This document shows positions 1 through 62,083 of a stretch of 64,000 nt of DNA, one piece after another. Origin of the DNA: Ylistrum balloti. Taxonomy: Eukaryota. The position numbers and the translations under genes are program-made. How positions within the stretch are numbered: the first letter of the stretch is position 1; every line of letters begins with the position of its first letter. Under the pieces are notes generated by a model. The model was given only the letters and a program-made list of their open reading frames with translations. It made no database searches and was not told the origin of the DNA. Location of the stretch: contig NW_026782116.1 of the NCBI RefSeq assembly GCF_031769215.1, forward strand, positions 310,001 through 374,000, given 5' to 3'.

Positions 1-1789
1 TCTTTCCATCTAGAGTCTGTTTGAACTGGTTAATTGGGGGTGGAACCTTCAGACGTTGCAGAAGTACAGCTTTTTGCCTCTGGAGACGAATGTACTTGGG
101 CCACTTGACAAAACGGCTAAGGTCTCTTTTTGGCTGAATATCCTGACCTGTTAACAAAGAAAAAACATTTAAAGAAATTCTCTTTCACAAGGAATGGAAC
201 CTTGATAGAAGAAACATTTTTTGTGTCGCATGTCTACTTGGGATCAGATCAGAAAAGGCAGGCATCATGGAAACAGCACTATTGTGATTAACGACTAATG
301 GTTTATCTCAAAATACAAGTTTACAACTTACAGACTTCTAATTTAGTTCATATATCAAAAAAAATTGAGCATCTATTACAGAAAGTAACTGCTCCAAACA
401 AAGTTTTTAGACTTCTCTCTCCTTTCAAGAATAGATGCAAAAGCTCTTCTCCCCTTCAAAATTTAGCTCGGAGTCTTTATCATTAACTGCCTGAATTTAT
501 TGGTAATCATTGCTATGCATTATTTTCAACCGAAATGTTTACAGTTGGACAAATATAAACTTCCTTTTAAGTTCACTACCTTTCATCTTTTAGGACAATT
601 TTTATAGCATCTTTAGAATCTCATAATTACCAATTCCAAAGTTCCTTGGTCGTTTCTCAATAAGGGGATTGACAACTTTCTTCTGTTCAACAGCCCTTTT
701 GGCCATCAAAGGGGCCGCAGCCACCTTCTTCTTCCCCTTTTTTTTCATTGGCTGGAATTAAAATATACCATAATATTATACAGTTGTTCCAGTTAGGGCA
801 AGTTCACAGGTATTAAATTTGGTGCAAGTCGAGGAACAGGAAGGGATGTAAAATATAGAGGAATACAAAAAAATTATACCTACAGTAGACTTGTCTGGAG
901 TTAGCTTTTGTGTTTAATCACCGAGACATGGAGTCCCCTCATCAACATGTTACCAAACCTCATCTACCTATACCCTATTCACTCCTATTATGACTAGCCC
1001 GTTAAGTTTTCTATAACTTTTGATTTTAAAAAGATCAGTAATGAACTTTTTGGGAAAACTGGCTTATCAAAACAGCAAGTCTTGTAAACTCAAAACTTCT
1101 CTGGTATCGTGTTACAAAGAGATACATGCAGTACTTTTCAGGCATTGCTTAATTATTTTCATTCACTGTAGAAATGTTTGATCGGTATGCAATTTCACTA
1201 TATCCGCCTAAACTGAAATTATATTCCTTGCAAATTTCTCTTATTTTACTTCATTAAAAGTGCAGATTAGCTATTGATGTTTTTAGTATTTTTTCAGCTT
1301 CAGAGAATTTACAACTTCGTGAACATATCAATATCCCTCGTCCGTTAAGTATGGCATTTCCTAGAGACCAGTGTAATAACTCGAAAAGTTCTCAATAAAC
1401 GTTACATCAATAGGCAAAAATTCTAAACCAGGGTTGGGAAGATGGATTTTAACAAGTATTTAGTTATTCCATTTTCGGATGTTCGCATTACCATTTTTAA
1501 AAAAAATCGTCCAAAGGACAATTACCATAAACTAAAGGAAAGCAAGGTAAAGTCACATGTTGTATGTTGACACTGAACACGGTTAATATTCAACGTCAAC
1601 AATGTGATATGTTCCTCAGTTCAAACATTTATTTAGCCTTAAACATCTCTTGACCGTTTTCATCAATACCACATCAAATAAAAAGGATATTTGTTTCTCA
1701 TTTAATATGACATTGAAGTATAAAGTCTCAAGGATGTCGGCGATAACTCTACGATAATGGAACACTTCAATTCAAGAACCACTAACCAT
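1..1789 (-). CDS. RPL7A: 60S ribosomal protein L7a (eL8/SURF3), 5' part; gene runs off the left edge
   Basis: Minus-strand exons 1789-1787 (ATG only, then gttagt donor), 751-631 and 147-<1. They splice in phase to [83 protein letters not shown], the classic eL8 N-terminus. Confidence 0.98.
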
Positions 1790-1946
1790 GATGGCTAACC
1801 CCGGAAAAGGGGGATTCTCGTTCCCACTTTCCGGATGTAGAATTCTGCCCGGATCAAGAAAACGCTTTAAGGTGATATCCAATTATGCAAACATTGTATT
1901 GACGCGGTCCCAGTGCGGCGGGCATTGCAACACAAAAGATCCGTAG
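1790..1946. promoter_or_regulatory. Compact bidirectional promoter region RPL7A/MED22 with 5'TOP pyrimidine tract
   Basis: CCCCCTTTTCC on the minus strand at 1813-1803, just upstream of the RPL7A ATG, is a typical ribosomal-protein TOP start. The region is locally CpG-rich. A probable MED22 non-coding first exon ends at the ccgtag|gtaatc donor at 1946/1947. Confidence 0.7.
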
Positions 1947-59400: not shown

Positions 59401-62083
59401 GAAACTGCTATCATAATTACTTTTATGTAGAAGTTGGTGTCATAAGTTAAAATGACTGGATCTTAACATAAAGGACATTTTTTCGAGGTCGGTCAATTAA
59501 TGAAAAGAATGTTGGCTCTCAATGTATTTGTCATCTTACTACCGATGAAGGGAAGGTGTGAACGACACACTATAGTATTGAACAAAGTATTGATACTATT
59601 GTATTGAAGTATTCAAATAATCGAGTCAAGTTTTCCAACGACCTCTGTGATTGGTCGGGGGCGGAGTTTAGACAACCTGAATAGTTGATCTGACACCCAA
59701 TTTGTTCCGGTAGGCGGAGTTATTGTACACTATCAGTTACATAACAATTACAAAGTAATCGCTGGAAAAATGTCCGACGACGGCAACAGTACGCAAAATT
59801 TTCTTCGACGAAATTATGTCCGATACGAACGATATGGGGAATCCTGTTTTTGTACAAGGCGATGTGGTTGTGATGGATAATTGTGGATTCCATCACCATA
59901 GACAGGGAGAGCGCATTTTAAGAAATATGACGAAAGAATATGGCGTGTCCCTGGTTTTTCAGCCGCCTTATTCCCCGGAATACAACGTAACTGAATATGT
60001 ATTCAATGTCATGAGACAGAGGCTTCGGGCAAATACCCGACTTGTGTCAGAATTTCTGGAACTTGCAGTAGTAAATGCTCTAGATATTCCGCCCAAGCAA
60101 CTTCAAAGTTTTTTCACATGTTGCGGATATGTATAATTTTCGATGGAAAGATAAAAAATAAAATAAAAAATATATGGGACCACAGAATTCCTTTACTTTT
60201 TAATGCAGTATGAATTATCGGTATATATCAGGAGGTCCCAGGTAAATCGTAATTCTTTGTTACATTAATAGAGCTTGGGCTTAAACCGAAATATTTTGAG
60301 CCAACCCTCCCCCCCCCCCCCCCCCTTTCAAAAAAATAAATAAATAAATAAAACTAGTACAGAATGACTATATGACTATATTCACTGTTAAGATGTTATG
60401 AATTCTCCGGTCCCAGTGATCTAACCTGTTGATATATATTTTGTACGTAAATTAGTTTAGTACGGAGTAACTTTCGTTTTCTCGTTGTACCGTCGATGGA
60501 AAAGCAAGGTATCATTGGGTGTAGAACGAAAAAAATGGGACAACCCAATTAGGTCTGATCTGAAGCCACCTGTGACTTGGACTCTTCCAATTAACCTCTC
60601 GCGACAGTCGAGTGTTTGTGAAATGCCGATGTCTGCACAGTATTTTTTCACCTGGCTCCACCCACAATCGATCTAGACTTGGCTCTGCCAATCAGAGAGC
60701 TTGTTGCATAAATTTAAGGAATTTGATTGGTGAAGTACTTCAGTACAATACTATCAATACTTTGTTCAGTACCTCAGTACTTGAAACGTTCACACCTTCC
60801 CTTCATCGGTAGTAACAGGCGATGAATGTAAATATTGTTAATTTTCTAAGTAAAGTCACTTAGATTGAGGTTGTTTTGAGATCAGATGCGAAAAAGGTGC
60901 CATGGGTCATTACTCTTTTTAACCAAGAACAATCAGGTTTTAAGTGGATTTCTGCAATGCAGATAAACACATGTACCTTCTAAACTAGTAAAATAATGGT
61001 GATGGTTCTTTTTCACGCCTGGGAAGAAAAGTCACAGAAGTGAGACTCATATTACTTTTCCTACAGTAACAACATCGCCATTAACATTTCATTTAAAAGG
61101 AAATAAAGAGGGTAGTAGAGCCAACACCGGGTATAATTCGGTAGGTGGTTGGTTGGATTCCTTACCCTCTTCGTCTGGATACCCGGAAGTATGCAGGGTG
61201 ATTGAAGGAAGAATGTACGCCCTTCATCTTCATTTAAAAGGTTTACATTTAGATCTGTTGCTCAAAAACTTTAACCAGACTTGGTATTTAGCAAGATCAG
61301 ATAATAGACACCTCGACACATCCATTACATATAAAAATACCTCCTGGATTTTATGGTCCAGCAGCTTTTATGCTCACTTTTTTTTAAGATACAAGTGTTA
61401 TTCCAATCAGGAATATACTTTGGGTTAAAAATGTCATATCTGAATGATTTTTTGAGAATAGGAGAATTTACATGATTTTCATTTCATGTTTTATAATGCA
61501 TCAATATTCAAATATGATAACATGAATATGACCATTAAATATTATCAATTAAAATTAACTTGGGGAAATTTGGTATTGGAGAAGGGAAGTCACAACTATA
61601 AATGTGTTATATATTTTGTATAAAAGTACCATACCAACTTGGCGGGATAAGCGAGTAATAATTACAGATGTTCCTTGTTTTATATTTGTCACTGTTTAAA
61701 AACAAAAAGGATGCCCCAAGCCCTTTTTTCAAAATGTATATTTCACTTCCATGAGTGACAAAATGAAGAAGGTATGATGGAGGCATTCACTTGTTAGTCT
61801 TATACCGAAGGCAACACATGTGTTTGGAATGTTTGATATTTGAAGAAAGGAACTCAGGATGCTGTGTTTTAATTTATCTAGGTTGAAATATCTAAATCAT
61901 GTTATTTTTACCCTTGTTTTGGTTGATAGAGAATGAAACAATGGTTATGTTTTTATGTTGTCTAGGTCGAAAGACAGAAATGATGTTGGTGTGTTGGATG
62001 GACAAGTAGGTCATTACAAGGATGGCATACAATTTATCAAGAAAAAAGACCTGAAGGGATTCAACAGAAAAAATAAACGATGA
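56487..62083 (+). CDS. C1orf131: C1orf131-like / DUF4602 protein (small-subunit processome factor), ~286 aa
   Basis: Exons 56487-56541, 57390-57772, 58355-58522, 58944-59030, 59287-59336, 61966-62083, phase-consistent. Lys-rich, with PEVVVFHKP, FDMKKARFEVQKVGIKGF..LVKLGAKLPKNKCYKYKEF and LDGQVGHYKDGIQFI, resembling recalled C1orf131 blocks. Confidence 0.8.
59539..60812 (+). mobile_element. Non-autonomous IS630/Tc1/mariner element (internal-deletion derivative, 1274 bp) in intron 5 of the C1orf131-like gene
   Basis: Perfect 26-bp TIRs CTACCGATGAAGGGAAGGTGTGAACG at 59539-59564 and 60787-60812, extending imperfectly to about 80 bp. TA dinucleotides flank both ends (59537-38, 60813-14). ORF 59816-60136 encodes the transposase C-terminus VVMDNCGFH...FQPPYSPEYNVTE. 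Confidence 0.92.

Follow-up and report, generated by a model that had tools for sequence, protein, structure and literature searches.

Two ancient head-to-head gene pairs lie side by side in the scallop Ylistrum balloti, probably through a juxtaposition within the Pectinidae

Gene content of the locus

The window analyzed here is a stretch of 64,000 nucleotides from the scallop Ylistrum balloti (assembly GCF_031769215.1, contig NW_026782116.1, positions 310,001 to 374,000 of the forward strand). [quoted passage not shown] The gene order in the window is RPL7A(-), MED22(+), an STKLD1-like gene(-), an open reading frame (ORF) of 75 amino acids (aa)(+), ATAT1(-), GNL1(+), FSAF1/C1orf131(+), and a transposase relic (Table 1). 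A preliminary description of this DNA had placed RPL7A, MED22, STKLD1, ATAT1, and GNL1 together within about 53 kb and had taken them for a block of the proto-MHC that is older than the vertebrate genome duplications. The five genes do occur in the order and within the distance given there, and the human positions that it named agree with the published Surfeit order (PMC5377540 Table 1) and MHC class I subregion (PMC10845735). The block itself is most probably a juxtaposition, particular to the scallop family (Pectinidae), of two ancient head-to-head pairs, RPL7A–MED22 and ATAT1–GNL1, and not a preserved piece of the proto-MHC.

The window is AT-rich (31–35% G+C), intron-rich animal DNA without runs of N, and its exons are 73–90% similar to chromosome LR736839.1 of the scallop Pecten maximus, as expected of a scallop from a different genus. 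The identities of RPL7A, MED22, and ATAT1 are clear from PDB and Pfam matches and from named homologs, and that of GNL1 is clear from its motif order and exon identity. The STKLD1 assignment is probable and follows from domain architecture and protein length.

Table 1. Features of the Y. balloti window (positions in window coordinates; CDS, coding sequence)
Feature	Position	Strand	Remarks
RPL7A (eL8, Surfeit-3), 5′ part only	1..1550	-	rest of the gene outside the window, to the left
MED22 (Surfeit-5), CDS	2607..4647	+	exons ~2607–2730, ~2838–2920, 4429–4647
STKLD1-like kinase and ARM gene	8082..23536	-	Pfam Pkinase, Arm, and ARM_LRRK2 matches; 3′ limit approximate
Conserved small ORF, 75 aa, one hydrophobic segment	24495..24722	+	between the STKLD1-like gene and ATAT1
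ATAT1 (α-tubulin N-acetyltransferase), CDS	32187..39723	-	about nine exons; start 39723; last coding exon 32187–32375
Putative shared divergent promoter	39724..40092	.	the 369 bp that separate the start codons of ATAT1 and GNL1
GNL1, circularly permuted GTPase	40093..53143	+	Pfam MMR_HSR1; acidic C-terminus
FSAF1 (C1orf131 homolog, small-subunit processome assembly factor)	57347..58534	+	at least two exons; 5′ extent uncertain
DDE_3 (Tc1/mariner-type) transposase relic	59759..60133	+	Pfam DDE_3, E 5e-13; 3′ of the gene block

The RPL7A–MED22 pair

RPL7A and MED22 are transcribed divergently in the window, with start codons 1078 bp apart. The ORFs of two RPL7A exons (2–184 and 605–757, with exon 3 at about 1–148 and exon 2 at about 630–751) match the eL8/L7a chains of solved ribosomes in a PDB sequence search (E 2e-22). 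Exon 1 probably contributes the ATG only; its candidate position, judged from the nucleotide sequence, is 1526–1528, behind a pyrimidine-rich tract that resembles a terminal oligopyrimidine (TOP) motif, CTTTACCTTGCTTTCCTTT. MED22 matches Pfam Med22 at E 3e-6 and 5e-16, and the 72 aa of its last exon share 98.6% identity with the 140-aa MED22 of Argopecten irradians and 95.8% with that of Mizuhopecten. The former value puts the window near Argopecten.

The same head-to-head arrangement of the two genes is found in the brachiopod Lingula and the annelid Owenia, so that RPL7A and MED22 are adjacent and divergently transcribed, as is characteristic of the Surfeit locus, in all three genomes. Vertebrate RPL7A and MED22 are likewise listed head-to-head in Table 1 of PMC5377540 and described so by Garson 1995 as cited in PMC9929512. 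In age, this core of the Surfeit locus equals the ATAT1–GNL1 pair described below. Pfam scans of the window's larger ORFs, which could miss small exons, gave no SURF1, SURF2, SURF4, or SURF6, and none of these is among the called neighbors of MED22 in Lingula, Owenia, and Pinctada.

Lingula harbors the same MED22 protein on two scaffolds, each with an RPL7A–MED22 pair and with a different gene beyond RPL7A, and it also has two ATAT1 entries. These doublets may be haplotigs or a recent segmental duplication.

The ATAT1–GNL1 pair

ATAT1 is recognized by Pfam Acetyltransf_16 (E 2e-26 and 1e-17), and in a tblastn comparison residues 1–464 of the P. maximus protein are covered by nine aligned exons. 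GNL1 shows the permuted motif order G4-G1-G3: NKVD lies at 47678, ahead of GKS (about 51318) and DCPG (51678). Its first exon (40093 to about 40170) encodes MPRKKPFSSKQKK, and further exons lie within 42293–42535, 46534–46770, 46946–47122, 47600–47824, 50676–50882, about 51300–51370, 51582–51794, 52111–52284, 52486–52653, and 52808–53143. These exons are 53–79% identical (tblastn), in the right order, to the GNL1 that adjoins ATAT1 in Lingula, Pinctada, Owenia, and Solemya. The N-terminus matches those of Saccoglossus, Pinctada, and Lingula; the first exon of the GNL1-type gene in Saccoglossus encodes MPRKKPFSVKQKKKQLQDKRE, and its counterpart in the window is MPRKKPFSSKQKKFQLQDKRQ. The protein presumably matches the human GNL1 sequence as well.

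ATAT1 and GNL1 stand head-to-head in the window, Pinctada, Solemya, Lingula, Owenia, and Saccoglossus, i.e. in three bivalve lineages, one brachiopod, one annelid, and one hemichordate. The start codons are 369 bp apart in the window, Pinctada has 360 bp between them and Lingula 826 bp, and the annotated gene ends are separated by about 380 bp in Owenia and Solemya. The Saccoglossus genes are adjacent with a wider interval (Table 2). ATAT1–GNL1 therefore has the properties of a bidirectional pair: a head-to-head orientation, an interval below 1 kb, and retention across phyla. The origin of the pair appears to lie no later than the protostome–deuterostome ancestor. A description of ATAT1 and GNL1 as a pair was not found in the searchable literature.

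The best match to the catalytic exon of ATAT1 in the protein library search described below is a 753-aa protein that matches the exon in three separate stretches. Its sequence suggests a tandemly triplicated ATAT domain.

The STKLD1-like gene and the small ORF

The two pairs are separated by the STKLD1-like gene, which is tail-to-tail with MED22, and by the 75-aa ORF. The serine/threonine kinase domain of the STKLD1-like gene is encoded by exons at 23342–23536, 20292–20477, and 19851–20081 and carries the motifs HRDLRPNN, DFS, and APE. It is followed by ARM-like repeat exons at 18066–18359, 12751–12936, 11856–12083, 11534–11698, and 11141–11314. The counterpart in P. maximus is annotated with 667 aa and with Pkinase and ARM matches, and the first exons of the two genes encode 65% identical protein. 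Because the kinase domain is an orphan, the ARM repeats form a tail, and the P. maximus protein has this length, the gene is probably the ortholog of STKLD1.

Searches with individual exons returned no named relative. A word-index protein search, whose length window excluded full-length proteins, gave nothing for a 98-aa ARM exon and one unnamed fragment for a 77-aa kinase exon. PDB sequence searches with three exons gave no STKLD1 chain, and the kinase exons matched PLK, NEK, and CDK7 kinases weakly (E about 1e-5 to 1e-6). In mammals, the sperm-specific kinase STKLD1 is located on radial spoke 3, and a model of the sperm axoneme that contains it has been described (PMC11779644). A scallop study uses 'Stkld1' as a marker of spermiogenesis (PMC13219418), which is counted here in favor of the STKLD1 identity.

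The small ORF starts about 960 bp from the start codon of the STKLD1-like gene and is divergent from it. The preliminary description had listed it as a candidate only; it is a real coding sequence that is kept at the protein level in P. maximus, where the syntenic ORF (32745–32981 of the fetched ATAT1 locus, with no gene called there) is 60% identical over 78 aa (tblastn E 5e-27) with an in-frame 3-nt indel. It has no Pfam or PDB match and is probably an unannotated small membrane protein.

Neighborhoods in other genomes

The gene neighborhoods were compared across animals by searching the catalytic exon of ATAT1 against a representative library of 1.8 billion proteins and taking full-length ATAT1 loci with 10-kb flanks on both sides (Table 2). 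Full-length MED22 proteins were used likewise, and the MED22 loci of Pinctada, Owenia, and Lingula were taken with 10-kb flanks.

Table 2. Neighbors of ATAT1 in the surveyed loci
Species	Upstream of ATAT1	Downstream of ATAT1
Pecten maximus	RPL23	small ORF, then kinase and ARM gene (667 aa) at 9.3 kb from ATAT1
Pinctada imbricata	GNL1-type GTPase, head-to-head	no gene called within 10 kb
Solemya velum	GNL1-type GTPase, head-to-head	no gene called within 10 kb
Lingula anatina	GNL1-type GTPase, head-to-head	Cg6151-P plus a hydrolase
Owenia fusiformis	GNL1-type GTPase, head-to-head	insulin-like gene
Saccoglossus kowalevskii	593-aa MMR_HSR1 gene, head-to-head, 8.4 kb	CMI2B-like gene
Branchiostoma lanceolatum	no GNL1 within 10 kb	SEA-domain gene
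Pocillopora verrucosa	no GNL1 within 10 kb	DAB2IP/SYNGAP-type RasGAP

Among the loci surveyed, the junction of STKLD1 and ATAT1, at which a gene of human 9q34 meets one of 6p21, is common only to the window and P. maximus. The downstream neighbor of ATAT1 differs from STKLD1 in all five non-molluscs (Lingula, Owenia, Saccoglossus, Branchiostoma, and Pocillopora). In tblastn comparisons, none of the non-scallop loci surveyed showed an STKLD1 exon in the 10 kb to either side of MED22 or ATAT1, and no kinase gene is found beside MED22 within 10 kb in Pinctada, Owenia, and Lingula. The adjacency is thus absent from the other molluscs and outgroups of the survey and recurs in P. maximus alone.

The two halves of the block are also far apart where both could be placed. 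In Pinctada imbricata, one chromosome (VSWD01000011.1) has ATAT1/GNL1 at 15.88 Mb and, 47 Mb away, MED22 at 63.34 Mb. In Owenia fusiformis, ATAT1/GNL1 is located at 6.62 Mb and RPL7A–MED22 at 20.01 Mb of one chromosome (CAIIXF020000006.1), 13.4 Mb apart. In Lingula, RPL7A–MED22 is found on scaffolds other than that of ATAT1/GNL1. This separation in three genomes points to a juxtaposition in the scallop lineage, and a date of the adjacency before the vertebrate genome duplications is not supported. The block likewise fails to provide the direct gene-neighbor evidence for an ancestral proto-MHC in a lophotrochozoan that had been expected of it.

Chromosome linkage and chance expectation

The Surfeit locus falls inside the human segment 9q33.2–9q34.3. 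This segment is the MHC-paralogous interval of chromosome 9 (PMC13012124), and human chromosomes 1, 6, 9, and 19 are known to go back to a single ancestral chromosome (PMC13012124, PMC8302630). Pinctada and Owenia each have orthologs of 9q34 and 6p21.3 genes on a single chromosome, and the linkage of MED22 with ATAT1/GNL1 there fits the published macrosynteny. One amphioxus chromosome carries 432 genes with counterparts on human 1, 6, 9, and 19, and the MHC-related ones are scattered along its whole length without forming a compact block (PMC13012124). Scallop chromosomes correspond one-to-one to several proto-vertebrate chromosomes and have kept the ancestral linkage groups (PMC8302630).

The number of mixed junctions to be expected on such a chromosome was simulated by random shuffling of gene order within one chromosome, with assumed gene counts chosen loosely after the 432 amphioxus genes. 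Under these assumed counts, 5–23 direct junctions between 9q-type and 6p-type genes are expected per chromosome. The looser pattern that the window shows, no fewer than two 9q-type units plus one 6p-type unit among four in succession, occurs at least once in 61–100% of the shuffles. Mixed junctions are expected because gene order is scrambled within the chromosome, and compared with this simulated linkage-group background the adjacency shows no excess. Once linkage on the same chromosome is granted, the block is not beyond chance.

Other mixed junctions are indeed found elsewhere. In Pinctada, MED22 adjoins a valyl-tRNA synthetase (ValRS) gene (14360–21347 of the fetched locus). In Pocillopora, the neighbor of ATAT1 (22474–26015 of the fetched locus) is a gene of the DAB2IP/SYNGAP/RASAL2 type with PH, C2, RasGAP, and DAB2P_C domains. 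ValRS and DAB2IP/SYNGAP1 are taken here to be members of the MHC paralogy set, an assumption made partly after the gene that marks the 9q33.2 boundary in PMC13012124.

These results bear on the reading under which the whole block, Surfeit-type genes together with MHC class I framework genes, would be retained proto-MHC microsynteny from before the duplications, later split between 9q34 and 6p21.3. It draws on the facts that every gene has its human counterpart in one or the other of the two regions named (PMC5377540, PMC10845735), that both halves share a chromosome in Pinctada and Owenia, that ancestral linkage groups are known to persist in scallops (PMC8302630), and that STKLD1 is near RPL7A/MED22 in the scallop as in vertebrates. 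The order, however, is not collinear. The vertebrate consensus is REXO4, C9orf96 (=STKLD1), SURF4, SURF2, SURF1, RPL7A, MED22, SURF6, ABO (PMC5377540 Table 1), which puts STKLD1 on the RPL7A side, beyond SURF1/2/4, and not on the MED22 side as in the window. Together with the distances between the halves in Pinctada and Owenia, their lack of linkage at the scaffold level in Lingula, the different downstream neighbors of ATAT1 in the five non-molluscs, and the chance expectation of mixed junctions, this makes a retained block very unlikely. It is highly improbable, too, that pectinids alone kept RPL7A–MED22–STKLD1 abutting ATAT1–GNL1, with separate losses in Pinctada, Owenia, Lingula, hemichordates, amphioxus, and corals.

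Origin of the block

The juxtaposition most probably arose as follows. RPL7A–MED22 and ATAT1–GNL1 would both have resided on the chromosome that was ancestral to vertebrate 9q33-34 and MHC 6p21.3. Ordinary intrachromosomal reshuffling would then have put them side by side, with STKLD1 and the small ORF between them. Each pair may be held together by one short shared promoter region, as a breakpoint between the two genes would usually damage one of them, and this is the most likely reason for the persistence of each pair. The link between the two pairs would be under no such promoter constraint and is not conserved.

Several observations weigh against this account. The survey left out gastropods, cephalopods, chitons, and echinoderms. 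No gene is called within 10 kb downstream of ATAT1 in Pinctada and Solemya, so that the next neighbor lies outside the view there; in Pinctada the 47 Mb to MED22 settle the question at the level of the block nevertheless. The gene numbers of the simulation are assumptions, and only the 432 amphioxus genes come from a paper. The pairs can also be broken. In Pinctada, no RPL7A is found within 10 kb of MED22, and the pair therefore seems either broken there or to have an unannotated and more distant RPL7A. In the P. maximus assembly, cytosolic RPL23 (uL14) faces ATAT1 in place of GNL1. Upstream of the ATAT1 start codon, the homology of P. maximus to the window extends for about 130 bp and ends near 39850, and the ATAT1/RPL23 discrepancy falls at 1618–5482 and 9873–10141 of the fetched locus, as compared with 39587–40093 of the window. 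Such a stop indicates that the divergent promoter of ATAT1 and GNL1, ancient otherwise, contains either the breakpoint of a rearrangement or a mis-assembly.

This disagreement raises the question of whether at least one junction of the window itself is a mis-join, the more so as the evidence for the MED22–STKLD1 junction comes from the window assembly. An artefact of this kind is hardly credible and was rejected. A contig from an independent public DNA run, about 2.4% divergent, spans 38684–40649 across the ATAT1/GNL1 promoter, and the arrangement of ATAT1–GNL1 is the same in four outgroups. The order of STKLD1, small ORF, and ATAT1 is furthermore reproduced on the P. maximus chromosome, and the window contains no runs of N.

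A further point that speaks against a purely recent assembly of the block is the position of STKLD1, which is no more than a few genes away from RPL7A/MED22 in vertebrates as well as in scallops. By a rough estimate, such closeness of this particular gene would arise by chance with a probability of about 0.3–1%, and it could be a remnant of ancestral proximity that Pinctada, Owenia, and Lingula have lost. In that case, STKLD1 would have been near RPL7A–MED22 already in the bilaterian ancestor as part of an extended Surfeit neighborhood, and only the join to ATAT1/GNL1 would be recent. The vertebrate consensus, in which C9orf96/STKLD1 is the next gene beyond SURF4 (PMC5377540 Table 1), the tail-to-tail contact with MED22 in the window, and the estimated improbability of a coincidence are in line with this partial ancestry. 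It is nonetheless unlikely, given that Pinctada, Owenia, and Lingula have neither a kinase gene nor an STKLD1 exon within 10 kb of MED22, that the side and orientation of STKLD1 differ from those in vertebrates, and that the orthology of the window gene is itself only probable. As a pectinid juxtaposition of two old pairs, the block is one instance of the known macrosynteny, in which gene content is conserved and gene order is scrambled.

Other features of the window

The FSAF1 homolog adjoins GNL1 on its downstream side and was absent from the gene list of the preliminary description. It matches Pfam PF15375 at 58352–58534 (E 3e-10). Human C1orf131 is presumably located at 1q42.

Interspersed repeat copies are found in intron 1 of GNL1 and elsewhere (41670–42340 and 42510–42840), with similar peptides at 26290–26980 and 54570–55150. 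Word depth in the public DNA run rises from about 10 to 130–1500 across these copies, which are probably a short interspersed nuclear element (SINE) or another abundant scallop repeat. Rfam and transfer RNA scans of the window gave no match, and the RPL7A introns present in it contain no small nucleolar RNA. Pfam scans of 20 further ORFs (at least 63 aa, outside the gene models) were negative as well, and so no hidden gene was detected.

Comparison with known systems

The vertebrate Surfeit locus (SURF1-6, human 9q34.2) resembles the left part of the block in that RPL7A (Surf3) and MED22 (Surf5) are adjacent and divergent in mouse and human (PMC9929512, PMC5377540). It differs in the place of STKLD1, which is on the MED22 side in the scallop and beyond SURF4 on the RPL7A side in vertebrates.

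The right part of the block is comparable to the MHC class I framework block of birds and mammals (DDR1...ATAT1-MRPS18B-PPP1R10-ABCF1-GNL1...PPP1R11), in which ATAT1 and GNL1 are linked and which contains the subregion order ATAT1-MRPS18B-PPP1R10-ABCF1-GNL1 (PMC10845735). In vertebrates, three to four genes lie between ATAT1 and GNL1, whereas the two are direct neighbors in the invertebrate pairs, and the scallop window contains no MHC or other immune gene. The ATAT1–GNL1 pair thus survives, in loosened form, inside the vertebrate MHC class I framework region.

Both pairs share with conserved bidirectional housekeeping pairs, and with ancient metazoan microsynteny in general, a divergent orientation, a short interval, and retention across phyla. 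ATAT1–GNL1, whose shared promoter is putative here, is disrupted in P. maximus and amphioxus and has been loosened in vertebrates. The two pairs can serve as anchors for tracing the linkage group and are candidates for studying bidirectional promoters that resist rearrangement.

The closest parallel at a larger scale is the proto-MHC chromosome of amphioxus (Abi-Rached 2002; PMC13012124) together with scallop–vertebrate macrosynteny (PMC8302630), where orthologs of 6p21.3 and 9q33-34 are likewise found on one chromosome. That similarity is chromosome-wide, with scrambled order and, as the 2026 study of amphioxus states explicitly, no compact block (PMC13012124), whereas the scallop block is compact but lineage-specific. 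The result agrees with recent work according to which proto-MHC genes of invertebrates share a chromosome and not a locus.

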